This document shows positions 821-62,714 of a stretch of 64,000 nucleotides of DNA, in pieces. Each line of letters starts with the position of its first letter. Position 1 is the stretch's first letter. The notes beneath the pieces are model-generated. The model saw only the letters and a program-made list of their open reading frames with translations. It did no database searches and was not told where the DNA came from. The translations under genes and the position numbers were made by a program. The DNA comes from Octopus sinensis (Eukaryota), in assembly GCF_006345805.1 (NCBI RefSeq), contig NC_042998.1:128092001-128156000 (forward strand), written 5' to 3'.

Positions 821-1697
821 TATTTATACAAATATTGATTTGTGTATATGAGTGAATTTCGAATGGTAGAATTTATGAGAGTTTTTTTTTTTTTTTTGTA
901 GTTAATATTTTATAAAGATCGAATAACTGATATTAATGCTTGTTAGACGGAGCCTACTTTATGAGCTAAATCCGTTAATATGCATTTCGAATTTATTGAT
1001 AAGGTGCTGATATTGTAAAACATTTTGCGAATTGTTTTATATGCGCTAATACTCATGGTACTGTCATCAAGCTTAGTTGTTATCCAGAACACTAAAGTGT
1101 TGATAACCGTCTACTGTTGAGCTTCTGTTTGTGACAAACACATTCTATGTTTTCCTATTCCAGACAGCTTTCAACGATCGCAACAATTTTTGAATTCAGT
1201 CCTTAGGCAATGATAGAACAACATTTTTACCTTAATAGCAATTTCACTTTTCTTATGTTTATGAATATTTGATGTAAAAATATACAAATCAACATTTACT
1301 CTTCCTTCTCTGTGTAATTACGTAAAAATTTGTAAAGATTTCGTAAAAGTGAATCTAGGAGAGAAATCAATAAAATTATAATTTCAATAACAAGTAGGAA
1401 TTATACATTGTACCATTGATGATTTGGGAGAATGAAAGTTTCATTTTGCCCTGTTCGATATAATGGCTCCTCTTTTACTCTTTTACTTGTTTCAGTCATT
1501 TGACTGTGGCCATGCTGGAGCACCGCCTTTAGTCGAGCAAGTCGACCCCCAGGACTAATTCTTTGTTAGCCTAGTACTTATTCTATCGGTCTCTTTTTGC
1601 CGAACCGCTAAGCTACGCGGACGTAATCACACCAGCATCGGTTGTAAAGCGATGTTGTGGGGGGGACAAACACAAACACACAAACATACGCGCACAC

Positions 1698-1740
<43 letters not shown>

Positions 1741-1758
1741 GTTAGGATCCCAGAAAAA

Positions 1759-1835
1759 CAGGGTCTCACTGAAGAATTCTCCCATGGCAAATAAATTATC
1801 TTGTTTGCTGAATAGAAAGAAACTGCAGTCTGAGA
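1759..1835 (+). ncRNA. Type I hammerhead ribozyme, copy 1
   Basis: Stem I UCUCA 1764-68/UGAGA 1831-35; core CUGAAGA 1769-75; stem II 1776-1818; GAAA 1819-22; stem III AC-UGCA-GU; GUC cut site after 1830. It has an A.A mismatch at the base of stem II and a weakened pseudoknot (CCCAU). Confidence 0.8.
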
Positions 1836-2155
1836 ATTTTCCGGTTTAGTAAATGTTTTTATCTTCATTTCACTTAATTTATCAAGCTTTTGTATTCCTA
1901 GCACATATTTCGCCTTAATGTACTGATATATGAAAAATATATGGCTTGTGTTAGTAATACCAGCGATTATAATTATTTTTATTTTATCGCAATTTGATTT
2001 GTTTACATATTTCTCGATAAATTATGAGCGCCAGGCGATATACCAGAATTCCCTAGTGTTGTCGGGACGTTCGGAGTCTGCGCAGTGATATGATTAGTTA
2101 GGAAGAGTAACTCATTAGACGCACATGCTTCTAGTGAGTTAGGATCCCAGAAAAA

Positions 2156-2232
2156 CAGGGTCTCACTGAAGATTTCTCCCTGGGCAAATAAATTATCTTG
2201 TTTGCTGAATAGAAAGAAACTGCAGTCTGAGA
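2156..2232 (+). ncRNA. Type I hammerhead ribozyme, copy 2 (best formed)
   Basis: Core CUGAAGA 2166-72; stem II base UUUCU/AGAAA fully paired; GAAAC-UGCA-GUC with cut after 2227; pseudoknot CAGGG 2156-60/CCCUG 2178-82 intact. Confidence 0.88.
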
Positions 2233-2552
2233 ATTTTCCGGTTTAGTAAATGTTTTTATCTTCATTTCACTTAATTTATCAAGCTTTTGTATTACTAGCA
2301 CATATTTCGCCTTAATGTACTGATATATGAAAAATATATGGCTTGTGTTAGTAATACCAGCGATTATAATTATTTTTATTTTATCGCAATTTGATTTGTT
2401 TACATATTTCTCGATAAATTATGAGCGCCAGGCGATATACCAGAATTCCCTAGTGTTGTCGGGACGTTCGGAGTCTGCGCAGTGATATGATTAGTTAGGA
2501 AGAGTAACTCATTAGACGCACATGCTTCTAGTGAGTTAGGATCCCAGAAAAA

Positions 2553-2629
2553 CAGGGTCTCACTGAAGAATTCTCCCTGGGCAAATAAATTATCTTGTTT
2601 GCTGAATAGAAAGAAACTGCAGTCTGAGA
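2553..2629 (+). ncRNA. Type I hammerhead ribozyme, copy 3
   Basis: Core CUGAAGA 2563-69; cut after 2624; pseudoknot intact; A.A mismatch at the base of stem II. Confidence 0.83.
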
Positions 2630-2794
2630 ATTTTCCGGTTTAGTAAATGTTTTTATCTTCATTTCACTTAATTTATCAAGCTTTTGTATTCCTAGCACAT
2701 ATTTCGCCTTAATGTACTGATATATGAAAAATATATGGCTTGTGTTAGTAATACCAGCGATTATAATTATTTTTATTTTATCGCAATTTGATTT

Positions 2795-2850
<56 letters not shown>

Positions 2851-3051
2851 GACGGGCTTCTTTCAGTTTCCGTCTACCAAATCCACTCACAAGGCTTTGG
2901 TTGGCCCGAGGCTATAGTAGAAGACACTTGCCCAAGGTACCACGCAGTGGGACTGAGCCTTGGAACCATGTGGTTGGTAAGCAAGCTACTTACCACCCAG
3001 CCACTCTTACGCCTATGTTTTTATTAGGTTAAAGGTTAGCTCCTGTTGATT

Positions 3052-18433: not shown

Positions 18434-18718
18434 TCTTTTATTCTTTTACTTGTTTCAGTCATTCGACTGCGGCAATGCTGGAGCACCACCTTGAAAGGCA
18501 CGTAAAGCACACTAACCCCATTTGTCAAGTGGTGATAGGGGAACAAACACGGACACAACACAAACACACTCACGCATATATACATATATATATATATATA
18601 GCTCACGAGGCTCTGGTCGGTCCGAGGCTATAGTAGAAGACACTTGCCCAATGTGCTACGCAGTGAGACTGAACTCGGAACCCTGTGGTTGGGAAGAAAA
18701 ATTTTACCACACAGCCAC
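18434..18718 (-). mobile_element. tRNA-derived SINE, family 2
   Basis: Same 3' end (cttttacttgtttcagtcatt) and head (cccgaggctatagtagaagacacttgccc) as 1472-3014. Confidence 0.85.
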
Positions 18719-18726
18719 ATATGGAA

Positions 18727-20531: not shown

Positions 20532-20690
20532 TGTGTGTGTGTGTGCGTGCGCGTGTGTGTGCGTGCGCGTGTGTGTGTGTGCGCGTGTGTGTGCGTGCGC
20601 GTGTGTGTGCGTGCGCGTGTGTGTGCGTGCGCGTGTGTGTGCGTGCGCGTGTGTGTGCGTGCGCGTGTGTGTGCGTGCGCGTGTGTGTAT
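20532..20690. repeat. 16-bp minisatellite (GTGTGTGTGCGTGCGC)n
   Basis: About 9 units, strictly alternating purine-pyrimidine. Confidence 0.9.
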
Positions 20691-28528: not shown

Positions 28529-28863
28529 AGACCCCCTTCGGTCATGAATGACCATGGGATTGCACCTAGAAAGTTACCCTCCTAGACACAAGTCCGGGCA
28601 AGGTTGTTTATGGAAGACCAGCAGTCGCCCATGCATACCAGCCTCCCCTCTCCACGCCACCAGTGTTATCCAAGGGAAAGACAAAGGTCGATACAGCTTG
28701 GCACCAGTGACGTCGCAACTCATTTCTACAGCTGAGTGAACTGGAGCAACGTGAAATAAAGTGCTTTGCTCAAGAACACAACACGCAGCCCGGTCCGGGA
28801 TTCGAGCTCACAACCTCACGATCGTAAGCTCGACGCTCTAACCACTGAGCCATGCGCCTTCAC
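28529..28863 (-). mobile_element. tRNA-derived SINE, family 3
   Basis: Minus-strand head gtgaaggcgcatggctcagtggttagagcg...gagctcgaatccc with A and B boxes, then cttgagcaaagcactttatttcacgttgctccag. Confidence 0.88.
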
Positions 28864-29604
28864 ACATACAGACATACATACATACATACAAACATACATA
28901 CATACATACATACATACATACATACATGCATACATACATACATGCATGCATACATACATACATACATACATACATACATACATACATACATGCGTAGTGA
29001 GATTGCGTGTAAGGGAATATCATTTAGTTATTTCGGAATAGTAAAATGAATGTAGCATATGCTAAGAATAAAATAAAATATATCTACATTTGAACAACAT
29101 GTTTGTGAGCACAAAAGAGATAAATGGTCAGAAAAATAAAACTCCACTACATAATTTACCTCGTAGATAGAAAAGTATGTTTATATATAAGATTAATATG
29201 AAAAGTAGAAAAACAACGAAAAGAAAACGGAATACAATGAAAGATATATGGAACATTTTCCTCAGGCCAGTCACATTAGGTTAATTTGACAGACGAAATA
29301 GTAATATTGGTTGAATACACCACAATATATTTATAATGTTTACTGCATCACATGAATGCCAGAGCTATGCAATTTCAGTATAAATATAATGCTTTTATAT
29401 AATGTGCTCAAACGAGCAATCGAAGCTCCGAGATAGACGTAACGACGTTATTTAAAAGTGCCGTACAGCAGACAAACTTATTTCAGGTGATATTTAAGAA
29501 AAGGTTTCTTTCTTTTATACAACGTACCATTAAGTGAGCTACAAGACCTGTTCTATCTTTTTATAAGCTAATTAGCTTATGAACTATGTTAAGTGCATAT
29601 ATAT

Positions 29605-29772: not shown

Positions 29773-30885
29773 GCCCCGCTGTGTGATATGGTGGGATCTC
29801 AGAAAGCTAGGGATTGACGAGTGGCTGGTGAAAGATGTACAGGCCATGTACAAAGACGCTGTTAGTAAAGTGGGAGTACAGCGAAGAATTTGATGTACTG
29901 GTAGGGGTTCATCAAGGATCAGTCCTTAGTCCCCTCTTTTTCATCATTGTCTTCCAGGCCATGACAGAGGAATTCAAGACTGGCATCTCTGGGAACTTTT
30001 ATACCCTGATGAATTGGCCCTCATAGCAGATTCCAAGAAATTTCATGTGTGGAAGCAAAACCTGGAATCTAAGGGCATCAAGATTAACTTAGCAAAGATT
30101 AATATCCTAGTAAGCGAGAAAACTGACAGAACCCTATCCACCTTAGATAGGTGGCCATATTCGATTTGCACGAAAGGTGTAGACAGGAACTCCATACGGT
30201 GTACCGAGTGTAAGTTATGGTCATACAAGATGTGCAGTGGATTAACGGGAAGCTTATCAGAGAAGATAGTTTTTCGTAAATGGAAGATGCACAGGATCCA
30301 TAAAAACTTTAGAGACTCGGGAAATTGATTCTCTCAAGTGCTCTGGTGGCTCATTAGAGGTAGTAGATAATTTCTGCTAACTAGGGAACCAAATTAGTAG
30401 CGGGGTTGGATGCACGGAGTGTGATAGCTAGAATAAAAATAGGATGGAGAAAATTCAAAGAAAGGTTTCTCTCTCCGGATGAAAAGAAGATTGTATGATA
30501 CATGTATACTGACAGCAATTCTACATGGTAGTGAGACATGGGTCCTGAATGCAGAGGACATGCGAAGGCTAGAAAGAAATGAGGCTAGTATTTTCCGCTG
30601 GATGTGTAATGTAAATGTAAATATTCGACAGAATGTTTAAGAGAGAAGTTAGGCATCAAAAGGAATTAGTTGGTGTGTGCAAGGGAGAAGACTGCGTTAA
30701 TTTGGTCATGTGACGCAGATAGACAGCTCCATAAAGAAGTGCCGATCTCTCAAAGTAGATGGGACACAAAGAAGTGGAAGACCCAACAAGATATGGATGA
30801 AGTACTGAAGAACGACATCAGGACGCAGAACCTTTCCGGTGAGCTGACAAAGGACCGAGATGCCTGGCGCATTACTGTACTCAAA
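29773..30885 (+). mobile_element. 5'-truncated, decayed RTE-clade LINE
   Basis: GVHQGSVLSPLFFIIV (RT motif), a decayed YADD region, a Cys/His module (WPYSICTKGVDRNSIRCTECK), and the RTE-type C-terminus. Frameshifted. Confidence 0.9.
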
Positions 30886-30886
30886 A

Positions 30887-30934
<48 letters not shown>

Positions 30935-31014
30935 TCAGCCGTGGCTTTTATCGCATTACGAAAAAAATTATATTATATATATATATATATATGGTTTTGT
31001 CTCTAATAATATTT

Positions 31015-31046
<32 letters not shown>

Positions 31047-31400
31047 CCATGGTTTATAAATATATACATCATGATGGTAGAAAAGCATATATTTCTCAGA
31101 TTCACGAGTACTTCTTACTTTAACTGTATTCAACAGCTGCTTCATCAAAACAAACACGTCCAAATGTATAATTGCATAACAGTGATAAATAATTAATTGA
31201 AATTAAATAAATTTGATACAAATTAATTTGAAAAACAATGTTTACCGAAATCATCAGGAATGTTATGTTAAGTTGATCAGAAAGCAGTTACTGGTTTAAA
31301 TACATAGAGATAATGAGAAAAAATACACTACGTAGAATAGTATGACAAAAGCAACAACAAATATATGGATAACTAAGAATAAGGATACATAAATACAAGC

Positions 31401-31465
<65 letters not shown>

Positions 31466-31467
<2 letters not shown>

Positions 31468-32590
31468 TTTCTTTATTAGCCACACAGGGCTGAACACAGA
31501 GGAGACAAATTACAAAGTAGAGCTTTCCTTTTGGGGGAGAAAACAAGGGGGGTAGGTTTTCGATCAAAAAGGGTCATAAAAAAACGATCAATAGGGATCG
31601 TGTATCAGAGAAATGTCATGATGTAAAGTGTAAAGGGGAAAAAAGATAATGTTTATCCGTGGAAAGAAAAGCCTACCGAGAAGACCACGGTAACCTCGGT
31701 CAATAATGTCACATGTTAACACATTTATTTGCGAGTAAGTAACCCTCTGCTTTAAATTTTTCCGGGTTCATATGATCATGCTCAAGGTGGCTTCGTCATT
31801 CATACGTGCCATCCTTGCTACATTCACCCATCTTTTTTTTAAACATTCGCTAGACAAAACTTGCCTCTCTACTCTCACTTTCCTTTTCAGGTGATACTTG
31901 AAGAAGTTGATGATAGATTGACCAGAGAGGAAAGTGCTTGTCTCTAATCCTTTCAGACGTGTCCACCAGAGATATTCTTTCGCCATAGCTACAAGTATGG
32001 TGAAAATAGCTCTTCCTTCCTGTTTGAAGGAAGGAGGCGTGACGATATTGACGATAGACTCGGCTGATAAACTGACTCGTCCCACACGTGACAGCAGTCG
32101 TTCGACATAAGCCCACAGGTCGGAAATGGTTGGACACTGCACGAGTGCGAGCAGAACGGTTTCGTCGCTCTGACCGCATCTCGGGCAGGTCGGCCCCGTG
32201 TTTCTTGAGCCGTATCTGTAGAGATTATCCCGAACGAGTAGCGCTTCGCAGTAGCACTGCCAGGCCAGGGATCTCTGGAAGTTGTCCATAGGTCTCGGCC
32301 CGAAAGTCGTCTTGAACAGGCGGGTCAGGTATTCCTCGTCGACGCTCAGGTTCGCCCAGATTCGCCCCGAGTTCGTCGTCGTACCTCTCCTCCACTAATT
32401 CCCTATAGAATGCCTTGGTTGTGATGCAATCGCTCAAGGTCGACCCGGGACAGCATAGTTGCTGGAAAGCAAAGCGACACTCGTGGTGTCATTCGCCCTT
32501 CCACGACCTCTTCTTGATCCATGACTGCAGCTCGGTCATGGAGACGAGCTGCAGGAAAGCGCGCCGCACAAACGGTGACCACACCTGCTC
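31466..32590 (-). mobile_element. 5'-truncated L1/Tx1-group LINE, C-terminal zinc-knuckle region and 3' UTR
   Basis: ORF 31768-32289 reads FQRSLAWQCY...CPRCGQSDETVLLALVQC (zf-RVT-like). AATAAA at the 3' end abuts (TC)n. Confidence 0.85.
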
Positions 32591-40859: not shown

Positions 40860-41500
40860 TAGAGCGAGACTGCTCACAGTATCCTCTAACCAGACTGATG
40901 AATGCATGCGTTTTGGAATGATTATCTTCTCTTTAGTAACAGAGACCAGAATGGCAGACGTAGTGAACTGACACGAGAGACAGGTTCCTTCTTATGATGT
41001 GTGAGCTGACTCAGTGTATTTATACTTGTCTACAGCGAGGAATTTTCATTGTCAAAATACAGTGAATTGTTCGAATATGATTCAAGAAGATTTGAACTGG
41101 TAACAGGCTTGTACTTATAAACTTCACTGCTTAGCGCTGTCACTCTATATTCTATTTACGACAACCCGGTGAATAGCGCAACCAGTCATTGAACGATGAC
41201 GGGAATATACTAAGAGGGACATGTATGTCATGTTAGTTCGCAACGTCTGCTTTTCTGGCCTCTGTTGATGAAGAGGCGTTAACCACTCTGAAATGAATGC
41301 ATCCGACAGTCTTATGATGAGGCGCTGTGAGCTTACTCGGTGTATTTACACGTATTTGTCTACAGCAAGGAATGTTCTCTATGACAAAATAAAATAAATG
41401 GTTTTCTTACGGGTTTGAATATGCCTCATGCATATTTGAACTGTTAATAAGTTTGTATTCATACAACTTACTGCTTAGCGTTGTCACCCCGTAGTCAATA
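40860..41500. repeat. Diverged direct and inverted duplications containing two decayed hammerhead-like motifs
   Basis: The reverse complement of about 40870-40975 aligns to about 41232-41335; about 40990-41150 aligns directly to about 41310-41490. Confidence 0.6.
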
Positions 41501-42026
41501 TTTATTGGGTTTTTTCATGTAATTATCCTTCTATTTTTCCTACATAAAAATAAATTTATTTGATATCCTTGTTCTATATATTTATTGTTTTTTTCATGTA
41601 ATTATCCTTCCATTTTTCCTACATAAAAATACATTTATTTGATATCCTTGTTCTATCCTTTACTACCGTTCGAAGATTGGAAACGTGAAACGAATAGTAA
41701 AGTCTTCAGTTTTCAATATACATGTGTTAGATGATCCGACACTGCACAATCACTACACACACGCATGTACTTACTGACACCCCCACACACACACACAGAC
41801 GCACACACACACAAACACAGAAACACACACAAACACACACACATATACACACACACACGCAGTCACACTATTCAAACAAAACGAAAAGACTGTAATGATA
41901 CATTCGAATATATGAGTGGGCGAATTGAAGTTTGAAATCTAAAGTTCAACAGTTCAGTGCAAGTTTAACAAAGCATACCACCTTCACACATACACACATA
42001 CACACACACACACTCACACACACACA

Positions 42027-49784: not shown

Positions 49785-50707
49785 TATTCCAGGGAGATAC
49801 GCTCTTTCCCTCCTTTTCTGCTTGGCACTGTCACCTCTATCGGATATACTAAACAGAACTGGATGCGGATATAAATGTTACGGCAAAACGATCAGCCACC
49901 TTTTATATATGGATGACCTAAAACTATACGCTACAAATGACAAACAGCTGGAAACACTACTAAAGACAGTTCATGGATTTACCAAAGAAATAGATATGAA
50001 ATTTGGATTAGAGAAATGCGCCAAAGTAACCCTGAAAAGAGGAAAACTAGTTAAGAGTAGCAACATCACACTAGATAAAACCAATGAAATAAAAGAATTA
50101 GACCAAAACCAAACTTACAAATACTTAGGAATCCATGAACTAGATAAGACACAACACACACAAATGAAAGAGAAAATAAAAAATATTATAGACGAGTTAG
50201 ATTAATACTAAAAACAGAGTTCAATGCTAAAAACAAGATAATAGGTATCAACACTTTAGCTGTCCCAGTTATATGTTACAGCTACAATATCCTTAACTGG
50301 ACACTAAATGAACTGACCAAAATAGATAGGAAAACAAGAAAAATAATGACAGGATCTAGGATGCATCACCCAAAATCTGACATAGAAAGGCTATATATAC
50401 AACGTATAGAAGGTGGTAGAGGCCTTATACAACTGGAAAACTACTATAAAATAACCACCATAGGACTGCAAAAATATCTACTTCAGAAGGGAGGAAAACT
50501 GATACAAATAGCGGCAAAACACGAGCAAAACAAAAAAACTGTTCTCAGTATTTAAGGAAGCTGACAAGTACAAACAAGAAATCATACCACCTAACAAATA
50601 TGAAGAAGAAGAAGAAGAAGAAGAAGAAGAAGAAGAAGAAGAAGAAGAAGAAGAAGAAGAAGAAGAAGAAGAAGAAGAAGAAGAAGAAGAAGAAGAAGAA
50701 GAAGAAG

Positions 50708-50739
<32 letters not shown>

Positions 50740-51674
50740 GAAGCAACTAAAGCTATAAAACAAATGAAATCCAAACTAAAAATAGAACAGCAACGAACCA
50801 TGATAAAACGATGGCAAGAAAAGCCCTTTCATGGTAAATACTGGACTAAACTAAATGCAAAAGAAATAGACAAAGAAAAATCCCAGCAATGGTTGAGAAG
50901 CTCAGGACTCAAAGCAGAACAGAAGGATTTTTAAGTGCAGCACAAGAAATTACCAAAAACATGTAATAAAAGAAATATAACAAGTAACTGCAGAATATGT
51001 GGAGATGGACAAGAAACAATAAATCATATTATCTCTGGCTGCCCAGTCCTGGCTAAGAAGGAATATATTCACAGACACGACAGAGTTGGGACCTATATAC
51101 ACTGGAAACTATGCCAACATTATGAAATAACAACAGAAAAAAGATGGTATAGGCACACACCAGAAAAGGTCACAGAAAACGAGAAAGCAACCATACTCTG
51201 GGATATGCCAATACACACAGATAGAGAAATTAAGGCCAACAGACCAGATATAGTTGTCAGAGATCATGAAGAAAAAAAATGTTTTCTAATTGATGTATCA
51301 TTACCAGCGGATGACAACGTGTCTCTAAAAGAAATGGAGAAACTTTCAAAATACAAAGACCTGGAAATAGAGGTAACCAGAATGTGGAATCTAAAAACAG
51401 AAACAATTCCTATCATAATAGGTGCATTAGGCATGATAAAAAAATATTCAGACAAATACATAACAAAAACACCAGGACTTACAAACACTTATAACATACA
51501 GAAAATTGCACTACTAGGCTCTGCACACATCCTACGCAGAACACTTTCCATACAATAACCATCAGAGCATCACAACAAATCACAGCACATACCCAAGGCA
51601 CACAGAGCTGCGCTCGATAGTGAAGTGAAAGCACGCTATAAAAATAAAACTACTGAAGAATAATAATAATAATA
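49785..51674 (+). mobile_element. 5'-truncated R4/Dong-like LINE (family A): RT end, zinc knuckle and restriction-like endonuclease
   Basis: IFQGD.LSPLLF, SHLLYMDDLKLY, YKYLG, CRICGDGQETINHIISGC, RHD, NRPDIVV, LIDVS, EKLSKYKDL; (TAA)n tail; frameshifted. Confidence 0.93.
50602..50736. repeat. (GAA)45 perfect repeat inside the LINE ORF
   Basis: 135 bp, in frame as poly-Glu between PPNKY and VEATKAIK. Confidence 0.95.
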
Positions 51675-52224: not shown

Positions 52225-52540
52225 GTGAAGGCGCTTGGCTTAGTGGTTGCGATTTTCGGCTCACGATCTTTGAGTTCAATTCCCGGAGACGCGTTGTGCC
52301 CTTGAGCAAAACACTTTATTTCACGTTGCTCCAGTCCACTCAGCTGGCAAACATAAGTGGTACCTGTATTTCAAAGGACCAGCCTTGTCACATTCTGTGC
52401 CACGTTGAATCTCGCTGAGAACTGAGTCAATGGTACACGTGTCCGCGGAGTGCTTGACCGCTTGCATGTTAATTTCACGAGCAGGCTGCTCCGTTAATCG
52501 AATCAGCTGGGACCCTCGTCGTCATAACCGACGGAGTGCT
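52225..52540 (+). mobile_element. tRNA-derived SINE (family 3 head, different tail)
   Basis: gtgaaggcgcttggcttagtgg...gagttcaattccc...cttgagcaaaacactttatttcacgttgctccag, followed by an (ATGT)n tail. Confidence 0.85.
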
Positions 52541-52571
52541 CCTATGTATGTACGTACATATGTATGTATGT

Positions 52572-53058
52572 ATTCCTTAATATTGTTGAATGTATATTAT
52601 ATAGTCTGTTGACTATTTTTTCTTTCTCACTGGACCGCTGGTGGCGAAAAATTTCTCTTGAATTTTTTGCTACCCTTATATTGATTAATTAATGATTTTT
52701 GGGCTAATTCTGAAATTAAATCAGCAGTTTATATTTGCTGCTGATAAGTTGGCGCGATGACGGTAGATTTTGAAAATTTAGAATATATATTCTCAAGGCG
52801 TCGATGCTGTCGCCTCGTGGATATATATTTCCCTGGCTTCTTTGCTGACGAGACAGGCCAGTGGCAAATAGATTTAATTTAATTTAATTAAATCGGTTTG
52901 CCAATATGTATGTCGAAACTATGCATAGTCCAAAGATGATAAGGGTAAATGTTTTTATTTTCCTTTGGTTTCTGAATTACAACTATTTAGCGGTTTGAGT
53001 TTAGCTGCTCTTTCTAGTGGGTCGAATGGCCTATCAAGGCCATTCCTTAATATTGTTG
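52572..53058 (+). mobile_element. 470-bp hammerhead-containing unit bounded by a 17-bp direct repeat; retrozyme-like
   Basis: attccttaatattgttg at 52572-88 and 53042-58; (ATGT)n on both sides; intact HHR inside. Confidence 0.75.
52833..52936 (+). ncRNA. Intact type I hammerhead ribozyme
   Basis: Stem I UCUUUG 52839-44/CAAAGA 52931-36; CUGACGA 52845-51; stem II GACA/UGUC with a long extension; GAAA 52915-18; stem III ACUA-UGCA-UAGU; GUC cut after 52930; pseudoknot 52833-38/52856-61. Confidence 0.92.
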
Positions 53059-53369
53059 TATGTATGTATTATGTATGTATGTATGTATATATGTACGTAT
53101 GTGTGTATTATGTATGTATGTATACATGCATGTATGTACGTATCGTCGTTACCAGTGATCGAATTTGCTTCGTAACATGTATTATGTTTTCGCTAATTAT
53201 TTTAGGCGCATATGTAGTCGCGATCAGACATAGACATCCACTTTATTCTCCTACTCTCTCACTCAACGGTACGCTAAGAATGGACAGCTGAAAAGAGAGA
53301 CAGATGCACCAGCACTAATATCAATAAAATAATGTTGAATAATAATAATGATGATGATAATAATAATAA

Positions 53370-60145: not shown

Positions 60146-62714
60146 TTATTATTTTATTGTCTTTGCACAACTTCTAACGCTGAAAATGTACTACGCTGTC
60201 TGTTGTTCACTACCAGTGAACTAAGGTAACACCCCTTATTTTTCGAGCACCATCCGGAGTATTTGAGCAGTTCCAAGCAGTGCTGTTTTCTGGAAGTGCT
60301 TCACCATTATTCCACCCCCTATTTGTTCCATGTACTTCTCAATATTTGTACTCACTGTTCTCAGGGCTCCGACAATCATTGGTACTTCTACCAAATTTTT
60401 CAGCAACCATAACTGCTTAACCTCATATCTAACCTGTCATATCTATCGACTATTCTTTCTTCCTTATCGCATCCCTTGTTGTCAACTGGGCATGCTATAT
60501 CTATGATCCAGCATCGTTTCCTTTCTTTCTCAATTAAGACTATGTCTGGTTACCTATTCTCTATCCCATTGTCGCACGGAATCATTAAATCTCATAGGGT
60601 CTTTGCATTATCATTTTCGACGATGGCTTCGGGTTTATATTCGTACCACTCTTTTGCTCTGTCGAGTCCATGCTTGTTGCAAAGTGTCCAATGGACAATC
60701 CTTGCTATGTTGTCATGACGTCTCTTATATTCTTTCTGGGCTAGTGGCGTACATTCACTGGTATTATGCCATGCGGTTTCACCATTTTGTCCACAAATTC
60801 TGCACTGATCACTTTCTGGCGTGTTATCTAGTCTGTATTCGATGTAATTCGTTATTAATGCTTGCTCTTGTGCAGCACAGATTACGGTCTCCGTTTCCGG
60901 TCTTAAATCAATTTTAGTCATCCATAACCATCTTTTTTCTCTGTGTGTCTTATCTTCAACATCCCTATGAAACTGACCATGCATTCTTTTCTTTATCCAC
61001 CTAATTTCAGTCTCATTCATTCGCAAGTGCTTGTACTGTGCTTTATCTTTGCAATCTTCCATCCTACACAAGCCTGACCATGTTACCTCCAATAATAGCG
61101 GTTCTGTGGCATTTTTACATATCATGCTGTGTTTGTTTTATTCTGCTCTAATGCTGTGTTCGCATCCAATCAATACTCTTCCCCCTCGTTTTTCTTGGTA
61201 CACTGTGTCACTTTTTGGGTGGAATATCCCATATCTAGTCAGCAACTTCTTTGTCTTTCCGTCTAATGTCCATGCGATTACCACTGCCCCATATCTAAGG
61301 AGTGAAACCGCCTAGGTGTTGATAGCTTCAATCTTATTCCGTTCGTTTAATTTTGACTTAAGGATTAGTCTCAGTCTGCGCAAATATTCCACCTTAAATT
61401 TTTTCTGTCATTACTTTCTCCATCAATTTATCCATTTTCAGTATCCGCTAGTACTTATAGCCCGTCTCTTCTATTTGCTTCATAACGTCTCTCAACGGTA
61501 TCGCTAGCTCGTCCATACATTTAATTTTGCCTCTTTTCAATACTAATACACCACACTTTTTCAGTTCGAACTCCATTCTGATATCAGCACTGTTGTGGAC
61601 TGACTACAATTTGTTTCAGTTCTTGCAACCATTCAACATCCTTCGTGTGCGCCATGTCTTTGCTCCAGATGTCACTTCAAAACCTTTGACTTTCAATGTG
61701 ATCTGGTATCAACTTTTCATCTGTACACTTTCCATTGGTTTCTTTGTAGAATCTTTTCTGACCTACTCTGAATAACCCATTCTCCTGGTATCCCTTCATT
61801 CTTTGGTCGTATCTTTCAGTATCATACTTCCTGTTCAGTGCCCTGTATTTTTGTTCGCTTTTAAGCCCCCTTCGCTTTTCGGTCTAACACAGAAATGTCC
61901 TTCGAGAGCATATCTAACCCCCGCCTTTATTCTTCTTTTCCACCACTTCTTTAGTCACTCCCTTTATATTTATTCTTCTTGGCATAAACACCCACATTTT
62001 CTGCTACAACAATACTTGCTACCTTGATCAAATTATTTGTTGCTGTGATGCTTTTTGTTCTGGTGTATTTCAAAATTTCATTCACATTTTTTGTTTCTTG
62101 GTTCAATTTCCACCGATCAACCTTTTAAGGTTGCAAATAATGTCGCTACCGCTCTCCTGTAGCCCTGCCTTTATTTTGTCGTAGATTGCCTTTCACCCAT
62201 CTGTCATGTCACCGTTAGTTTTATTGTCTTCTTTCAGACCATCTATATGTCTTTCATCGAGCAAGCTATCACTGTTCCTTTCCTGTGGTTTATTAGAGAT
62301 CTCACTCTGTTTTCTGCTATGAGATTACTTATATCAACAGGAACTGTATTTTCATCGTCTCTTCTGCTGCTATTTTCCAATACCCGTCTTTTGATAGCTT
62401 CGAGCTCTACTTCTGTGAACCAACGATTGTCCTTATTGCTCTAGCTTGATCACATAATCTCTGTTCCGTGAGTTGAAACAATCCTATTTCTCTCCATTGA
62501 TCATACATATGTTTTTGGTACCCCCTAATATGAGCACCATTTTCATCTACAAGGTTACTCAAGTAGTAACACTCCATGACCACAACATTGACTTGTTTGT
62601 TCCCTCTACGCCGTCTGTTTTAGTCCATTGCTAGATAACGACAGGCTGGAGCCGGACTAGAGTCTCTGAGCCTGCTGGGTACAACACTGTCACCATCAAG
62701 GGCTTCAGTTTCAT
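60146..62714 (-). mobile_element. R4/Dong-like LINE (family B) with both ends but no RT core
   Basis: N-terminal VMECYYLS...GYQKHMYDQW...EQRLCDQARAI; EWLQELK..PQQ joined to ADIRMEF.LKKC; CRICGQNGET..H..SEC, RRHD, KTALLGTAQILR; (AAT)n tail. Confidence 0.9.

Follow-up and report, generated by a model that had tools for sequence, protein, structure and literature searches.

A young tandem hammerhead ribozyme array and a diverged relative in an octopus genomic window as candidate non-LTR retrozymes

A 64,000-nt stretch of the Octopus sinensis genome (NCBI RefSeq assembly GCF_006345805.1, contig NC_042998.1, positions 128,092,001 to 128,156,000 of the forward strand; hereafter the window) was found to contain two hammerhead ribozyme elements: a young tandem array of a 397-bp unit, termed element A, and a diverged, essentially monomeric element with a 470-bp unit, termed element B. 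The two are best read as separate families of retroelements, neither autonomous nor protein-coding, of the metazoan non-LTR (non-long terminal repeat) retrozyme type, moved by the mechanism proposed below, a reading to which a probability of about 70% is assigned. An original prediction, made from the letters of the sequence, had already called the array a candidate retrozyme. This call is supported by an operational definition of such elements, by the size of the unit, by the insertion of the array into the (AT)n tract of a short interspersed nuclear element (SINE) and by the presence of the second element.

Tandem Repeats Finder (TRF) reports a period of 397, 2.7 copies and 98% matches for element A. 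When the units are aligned in register (two full units and a partial third), four columns differ (40, 48, 49 and 161), three of which fall within helix II of the ribozyme. The predicted 397-bp array of 2.7 near-identical units is thus borne out by both analyses, and the hammerhead parts listed for it (stem I, core, stem II, GAAA, palindromic stem III and GUC) were all found where they had been placed. The junctions of the element are uncertain by a few bases because both overlap TA repeats. In each hammerhead, stem I (UCUCA/UGAGA) and the core strand CUGAAGA are followed by a long helix II and then by GAAA. Helix II is composed of a base of 4-5 bp, an internal loop, an 8-bp GCAAAUAA/UUGUUUGC helix and a hexaloop. 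Helix III reads A-C-[UGCA]-G-U, with ACUGCAGU being a perfect palindrome, and the GUC triplets lie at 1828-1830, 2225-2227 and 2622-2624. The predicted minimum free energy (MFE) of these hammerheads ranges from -15.6 to -21.2 kcal/mol.

A permissive scan of positions 1600-2950 with the Rfam model Hammerhead_1 (RF00163) returned three plus-strand matches, one per hammerhead (scores in Table 1), with E-values of 1.5e-4 to 1.7e-3 for this 1351-bp search that become about 50 times larger when scaled to the window. A purpose-made hammerhead descriptor, which requires the core and all three helices, found no match in any of 300 dinucleotide shuffles of the window, and a plain-sequence pattern for the core matched three times where 0.04 matches were expected. 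The pair at positions 10.1/11.1, at the base of helix II, varies among the motifs. It is an A.A mismatch in units 1 and 3, is turned into a U-A pair in unit 2 by an A>T change at position 2173, and is G-C in element B. An alternative placement, in which the A at position 25 would be a nucleotide bulged between 9 and 10.1, as is characteristic of Penelope-like hammerheads, was dropped, since it would put the C-G pairing of helix II out of register. Neither element yielded a ribozyme or other RNA family on its minus strand in a permissive Rfam scan, whose microRNA-family matches are microsatellite artefacts, and ARAGORN detected no transfer RNA (tRNA)-like gene within or around the array.

Element B, on the same strand, was matched by the descriptor at 52840-52935. 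It carries the 17-nt sequence ATTCCTTAATATTGTTG at both of its ends, 470 bp apart, and thus amounts to 1.04 units, exceeding one unit by 17 nt. Its hammerhead contains stem I UCUUUG/CAAAGA, the core CUGACGA and GAAA after helix II. Helix II itself begins with a GACA/UGUC base that includes the canonical G10.1-C11.1 pair and extends into a long apical hairpin, and helix III is the 12-nt palindrome ACUAUGCAUAGU. Judged from its sequence, this hammerhead appears cleaner than those of element A. All four motifs share the type I layout, in which helix I is open and the other two helices are closed, and all retain the core nucleotides C3-U4-G5-A6-N7-G8-A9, G12-A13-A14, A15.1-U16.1 and H17, in the form CUGA(A/C)GA, GAAA, A15.1-U16.1 and GUC.

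The kinship of the two elements was assessed with a covariance model (R1) built from the three element A hammerheads alone. Run over the window on both strands with filters off, R1 found hammerhead B as its only other significant match (24.4 bits, E about 0.01). The model-based alignment of A and B fits the structure: 95% of cells are paired, a share that falls to 34-52% once the partners are shifted by 1-3 columns. Nine of the 20 pairs have changed on both sides and still pair, namely four of the five in stem I, four of the five at the base of helix II and one in the apical helix. The apical part of helix II begins with GGCAAAUA and finishes with UUUGC in both elements. An alignment made with MAFFT misaligned the cores and was set aside in favour of the model-based one. 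Outside the hammerhead and one adjacent block, the units of A and B are about 46% identical, that is, unalignable. It had been proposed that a genuine ribozyme core should be better conserved than its flanks, and in this comparison of two families the hammerhead has indeed been kept by compensatory changes and the remainder has not.

The adjacent block, 18 nt long (GTAAATGTTTTTATYTTC), is the only non-ribozyme sequence common to A and B and starts 15-19 nt 3' of the cut site. It occurs in the window at only these four places, a count reached in none of 100 shuffles. BLAST had revealed the block ahead of any use of the descriptor, which itself ignores it, so the block constitutes independent evidence that A and B are related. 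The block contains a run of five T and may be part of a region recognized by a reverse transcriptase (RT), or may be a stop signal for RNA polymerase III. Nothing else having been conserved from one element to the other, the hammerhead and the 18-nt block likely form a cis-acting module for processing and, perhaps, for RT recognition.

Both elements are insertions into microsatellites, and A additionally splits a SINE; each family is represented by one copy in the window. The joined flanks of element A are collinear with a second SINE copy at 18434-18725, the insertion point falling inside the (AT)n tract of the latter. This uninterrupted copy, which runs tail, ACAC-rich stretch, (AT)n, head, displays the empty architecture. 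The comparison demonstrates that element A inserted into an (AT)n tract within a minus-strand SINE, and that the array is younger than the SINE that it interrupts. Element A is young, given that only four substitutions are seen in 1063 bp (about 0.3-0.4% divergence, assuming that the units were identical at insertion). On the same assumption, the octopus repeat clock quoted in PMC13282606 gives an age on the order of a million years. AT-rich microsatellites make up 5.4% of the window, and A and B both lie in such tracts. Since the hammerhead elements sit in SINE-linked microsatellites, SINE-borne repeats may serve as landing pads for them. Two microsatellite-bearing SINE families were seen in the window, one with an internal (AT)n tract (1460-3015, split, and 18434-18725) and one adjoining (TATG)n/(ACAT)n repeats (52225-52545 and 28729-28884).

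Li et al. (2026) define an active non-LTR retrozyme as a TRF-detected tandem repeat with at least two consecutive units carrying complete hammerheads, each with a hammerhead MFE below -5 kcal/mol. Element A, with three consecutive units, falls within this definition, and element B, with 1.04 units, falls outside its two-unit requirement and is classed as a monomer derivative. The general profile of non-LTR retrozymes (a unit of about 150-450 bp, GC below 45-50%, and no LTR, primer-binding site (PBS), polypurine tract (PPT) or protein) also describes these elements: their units have 34.8% (A) and 34.9% (B) GC, neither has an LTR, PBS or PPT, and their open frames, of at most 95 aa, have no known relatives. 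Members of this group are further expected to be dispersed in their genome as insertions, to give rise to linear and circular monomer RNAs and to share the genome with autonomous Penelope-like elements.

Table 1. Coordinates of elements A and B, their ribozymes and their insertion sites in the window
Feature	Position	Strand	Basis or remark
Element A, tandem array, 2.68 units x 397 bp	1737-2799	+	TRF gives 1735-2804
Hammerhead 1, type I, GUC cut after 1830, A.A mismatch at 10.1/11.1	1764-1835	+	Rfam 25.4 bits, descriptor
Hammerhead 2, cut after 2227, U-A at 10.1/11.1, top-scoring copy	2161-2232	+	Rfam 28.5 bits, E 1.5e-4
Hammerhead 3, cut after 2624, A.A mismatch at 10.1/11.1	2558-2629	+	Rfam 25.3 bits
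Predicted 397-nt monomer 1, if hammerheads 1 and 2 both cut	1831-2227	+	Deduced from cut sites
Predicted 397-nt monomer 2	2228-2624	+	Deduced from cut sites; circle fold -95.7 kcal/mol
18-nt block GTAAATGTTTTTATCTTC in A, starts 19 nt 3' of cut	2246-2263 (also 1849-1866, 2643-2660)	+	
Left part of (AT)n target microsatellite	1698-1736		Sequence reading, TRF
Right part of (AT)n target microsatellite	2800-2849		Sequence reading, TRF
Host SINE, tail half, split by insertion	1460-1697	-	Comparison with related copy
Host SINE, head half	2850-3015	-	Comparison with related copy
Related SINE copy without insert, empty-site comparator	18434-18725	-	Order: tail, ACAC-rich stretch, (AT)n, head
Element B, diverged hammerhead element, unit 470 bp, 1.04 copies	52572-53058	+	Descriptor, sequence reading
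Hammerhead B, GUC cut after 52930	52839-52936	+	Descriptor, element A model
18-nt block GTAAATGTTTTTATTTTC in B, starts 15 nt 3' of cut	52945-52962	+	
Left (TATG)n-type microsatellite flanking B	52545-52571		3' end of tRNA-like SINE (about 52225-52545)
Right (TATG)n-type microsatellite flanking B	53059-53143		Sequence reading, TRF

How might such elements be processed and move? As a hairpin, helix III is predicted to be unfavourable or nearly neutral (+2.9 kcal/mol in A, with 2 bp and a UGCA loop; +0.4 kcal/mol in B, with 4 bp and a UGCA loop), and, when two ribozymes pair through the palindrome, the resulting duplex is predicted to reach -11.1 kcal/mol in A and -15.9 kcal/mol in B. Newt, axolotl, schistosome and Penelope-like hammerheads with a helix III of this kind are known to cut poorly alone and well as dimers. 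With a weak hairpin and a strong duplex, tandem transcripts would therefore be expected to cut and released monomers not to cut again. The predicted monomer circles are highly paired, at -95.7 kcal/mol for A (z = -3.0 relative to shuffles, 64% paired) and -142.4 kcal/mol for B (z = -6.9, 68% paired). In element A, GAGAAUU immediately 3' of the cut (2228-2236) is perfectly complementary to AAUUCUC on the 5' side of helix II (2171-2180), as in the other units, and in the fold predicted for the circle the two stretches pair and take the place of the ribozyme. This could switch the RNA on and off, between a cutting and a resting conformation.

Both insertions exceed one unit, and the cut site bears no relation to where they begin and end. 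Each insertion extends 128-175 nt beyond a hammerhead on its 3' side; there the unit runs on into repeat-like sequence, and the 3' junctions read TTTA|CATAT in (TA)n for A and GTTG|AATGTAT in (TATG)n for B. A correspondence of the two 3' ends to homologous positions of the unit was considered and was not upheld by a weak local alignment. The junctions fit target-primed reverse transcription initiated within a template of more than one unit. This template could be a circle or, equally, an uncut multimer, as has been proposed for an anole Penelope-like element, and the array may have grown later by unequal crossing-over. The earlier suggestion that the non-integer copy number reflects rolling-circle copying of a circle into DNA is not established by the array, as a linear multimer copied from within, of the kind seen in vitro for a Penelope-like element, or unequal crossing-over after insertion would leave the same footprint.

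From this observed anatomy the following mechanism can be put together, each of its steps being inferred. A plus-strand transcript of more than one unit would fold into type I hammerheads, whose palindromic helix III, too weak as a hairpin, would pair two neighbouring ribozymes into a double hammerhead that cuts after GUC; in element A, this would free 397-nt monomers with 5'-OH and 2',3'-cyclic phosphate ends. The monomers would then collapse into a highly paired fold that disrupts the ribozyme, in A by pairing of GAGAAUU with AAUUCUC, and a host RNA ligase would circularize them. A Penelope-like element acting in trans would supply RT and GIY-YIG endonuclease, nick an AT-rich microsatellite and copy a template of more than one unit, either circle or uncut multimer. 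Copying would begin at a target-like patch 130-180 nt 3' of the hammerhead and end at a variable 5' point, leaving 2.7 units in A or 1.04 units in B. Throughout, the hammerhead and its adjacent 18-nt block would act in cis, for processing and perhaps for recognition by the RT. A bolder version of this last step, considered rather doubtful, is that a module of about 110 nt (hammerhead plus GUAAAUGUUUUUAUYUUC) is the complete cis-signal by which any RNA could hijack a Penelope-like RT, which would be primed when nicked microsatellite DNA anneals to the repeat-like patch that lies 130-180 nt downstream; in that case the hammerhead would owe its conservation as much to its place in a recognition fold for the RT as to cutting. 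A parallel to such a signal is offered by the anole Penelope-like element, in which a protein-binding region has been mapped beside the hammerhead.

Several observations weigh against the retrozyme reading. No Penelope-like RT/GIY-YIG frame lies in or beside A or B, and none is recognizable in the window. At its gathering thresholds, Rfam gives no match anywhere in the window, the element A scores falling below the curated score of 34 bits for Hammerhead_1, and hammerhead B is absent from Rfam output even at E-values up to 10. The shortfall of A is attributed mainly to 29 nt inserted in loop 2 and to a helix II base rich in A and U, and the absence of B to its helix II insertion of about 50 nt; non-G-C helix II bases are a further factor. 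The search with ribozyme models, suggested with the original prediction as a check, thus succeeded with the permissive scan and the descriptor and gave nothing at the gathering threshold. The A.A mismatch at 10.1/11.1, normally G-C, in two of the three element A hammerheads may mean reduced or lost activity. The covariation compares effectively two independent sequences, in an alignment fitted to the model and with a member, B, that was found by a descriptor demanding pairing. Low GC is uninformative because the whole window has about 35% GC, and each family is known from one copy in 64 kb. Finally, in the anole Penelope-like element, the one such element studied in vitro, the RT start is not homologous to the target and the hammerhead is dispensable for insertion, so the cutting and circularization steps may be irrelevant to mobility.

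What else could account for the array? The least implausible alternative is that it is the severely 5'-truncated 3' end, or the pseudo-LTR, of an autonomous Penelope-like element with terminal tandem hammerheads, to which the ribozyme would then belong. Pseudo-LTRs of these elements do hold type I hammerheads with a short palindromic helix III and a long helix II, some of the elements bear minimal hammerheads in tandem, their insertions are mostly 5'-truncated and targeted to AT-rich DNA and (TA)n, and the consensus sequences of frog retrozymes match pseudo-LTRs. Yet element A contains no reading frame with a known relative, its 5' side directly adjoins (AT)n and SINE sequence, and the larger open frames of the window include none for RT or GIY-YIG. 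A period of 397 bp repeated 2.7 times is, moreover, the layout of a retrozyme, whereas tandem Penelope-like copies have a period of about 3 kb. This origin is accordingly judged unlikely, and the distinction is in part semantic if retrozymes themselves come from pseudo-LTRs.

A further alternative is local growth from a single copy. If a monomer had inserted at the site of A and had then been locally amplified to 2.7 units by unequal crossing-over or slippage, the hammerheads would be non-cutting relics and the locus now a minisatellite. Unequal crossing-over is the accepted model of satellite growth, monomeric derivatives are common, B is essentially monomeric, and the A.A mismatch affects two of the three hammerheads of A. 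Relics would not be expected to show four intact hammerhead cores with helices kept by compensatory change between families, however, and four substitutions in 1063 bp leave little time for decay, so the ribozymes of element A should now be as good as at insertion. B, too, exceeds one unit by its terminal 17 nt, for which a template of more than one unit is a simpler source than later duplication. Such local amplification of relics is considered improbable, more so than a pseudo-LTR origin. That the hammerheads are chance resemblances in an AT-rich repeat, as their Rfam scores below the curated threshold might suggest, is effectively refuted by the lack of any descriptor match in the 300 shuffled windows and by a second locus with covarying helices and a shared flanking block. 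The retrozyme reading is thus preferred for both elements.

Searches for relatives of the elements were made at several levels. The 95-aa open frame of the A unit, used as a protein query to stand in for related copies in assemblies, gave no relatives, and the two longest start-to-stop open reading frames (ORFs; 52 and 56 aa) of this unit have no exact record in the public gene-position index. Exact 22-mers gave no matches in metagenome and viral collections. A generalized pattern combining the 3' half of the hammerhead with the block matched 22 metagenome loci and one viral locus, which were rejected as chance matches: model R1 scored them at 20.2 bits at best, and the CUGA core was lacking. 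Pfam matches in the window are limited to RVT_1 and zf-RVT fragments of long interspersed nuclear element (LINE) type, located away from A and B.

These LINE-type fragments lie at 49822-51558, 60592-61125 and 30014-32289. A 207-aa frame at 50935-51558 has relatives of about 60% identity in corals, anemones, a sea cucumber and a tunicate, as well as relatives of 83-90% identity on short contigs, and the closest relatives of the LINE ORFs of the window are likewise on contigs of about 1 kb (GCA_024449705.1, SRR7158634). Two of these LINE ORFs have no exact record in the public gene-position index. Over the window as a whole, where GC content is 34.9%, microsatellites with a period of up to 6 occupy 8.2% and TRF lists 101 rows. 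Small tandem repeats at 41498-41656 (79 bp x 2.0) and 20537-20688 (16 bp x 9.5) contain no ribozyme motif. Permissive Rfam searches yielded many false microRNA-family matches on AT/GT repeats, for example mir-297 at 53075-53134 with 47 bits.

If the reading is true, a cephalopod-type genome joins the hosts of hammerhead retrozymes; no paper in the searchable literature describes either hammerheads or retrozymes in cephalopods. As a locus, A is exceptionally clear-cut, with a young element inside a recognizable SINE microsatellite and an empty-site comparator nearby, and the diverged sister element 50 kb away isolates the conserved module. Together, A and B would be a convenient substrate for studying what retrozymes need in cis, including dimer-dependent cleavage, a natural variant at 10.1/11.1 and the role of the 18-nt block. 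Default Rfam annotation misses such elements, A being sub-threshold and B unreported, so retrozymes with a long helix II are probably under-counted in mollusc genomes.

How do elements A and B compare with known hammerhead systems? Plant LTR retrozymes are likewise non-autonomous, and their hammerheads excise a circular RNA intermediate, which for A and B is a prediction. They differ in having type III hammerheads, LTRs, a PBS, a PPT, 4-bp target duplications, GC above 55% and a dependence on Ty3-type elements, none of which applies to A or B. The newt satellite 2 and axolotl repeats and the schistosome Sm-alpha family are closer: their repeats, arranged in tandem or dispersed, measure about 330-350 bp and carry type I hammerheads, and their weak palindromic helix III makes cleavage dimer-dependent, as the predicted energies suggest for A and B. 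In the axolotl HHR_Amex2 family, helix II likewise starts on a mismatch (U.U), and helix III has 2 bp capped by a tetraloop, features comparable to those of A. These families, however, reach 10^4-10^5 copies and conserve the contacts between loops 1 and 2. Helix II of A and B is long and interrupted.

Hammerheads of Penelope-like elements (Cervera and de la Pena, 2014, PMC4209133; Frangieh et al., 2024, PMC11167929) have a short helix I (4-6 bp) and an expanded helix II, and their helix III of a few base pairs is capped by a palindromic loop, which points to action as dimers; A and B share all of these traits. Their G10.1-C11.1 pair is present in B and replaced by A.A or U-A in A. Penelope-like elements also share AT-rich or (TA)n targets, insertions of more than one unit and a 3' end about 100-200 nt 3' of the hammerhead; their endonucleases cut AT-rich DNA, and several clades favour (TA)n. 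Unlike A and B, autonomous Penelope-like elements carry, between pseudo-LTRs, a single ORF for a telomerase-like RT and a GIY-YIG endonuclease, and the 3' junctions of A and B show microhomology to the target, which the start site of the anole element does not. In style, the ribozymes of A and B resemble the hammerheads of Penelope-like elements more than they do the canonical loop-loop type, which accords with the view that the pseudo-LTRs of Penelope-like elements gave rise to animal retrozymes. The literature describes Penelope families that are active in Octopus vulgaris, as well as Naiads in several cephalopods.

The closest overall counterparts are the metazoan non-LTR retrozymes (Cervera and de la Pena, 2020, PMC7229834), which have a type I hammerhead in every head-to-tail unit, as observed here, and are non-coding, low in GC and devoid of LTR, PBS and PPT, as are A and B. 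In Mytilus galloprovincialis, the unit is 350-390 bp long, compared with 397 bp in A and 470 bp in B; the unit of B, present in 1.04 copies, slightly exceeds the usual retrozyme range of 150-450 bp. Helix II, with 43 nt in A and 63 nt in B between the core strands, is much longer than the canonical 4 bp. The 2-bp helix III of A with its palindromic tetraloop fits retrozyme hammerheads, and the nucleotides of the classical contact between loops 1 and 2 are missing from mussel retrozyme hammerheads, as they are here. Retrozyme circles of invertebrates measure 170-400 nt and are highly self-paired, and the monomers of A and B are predicted to fold likewise. Retrozyme-type elements are thus known in other animals, mussels included, and the elements described here are further members of that group and not a new kind.

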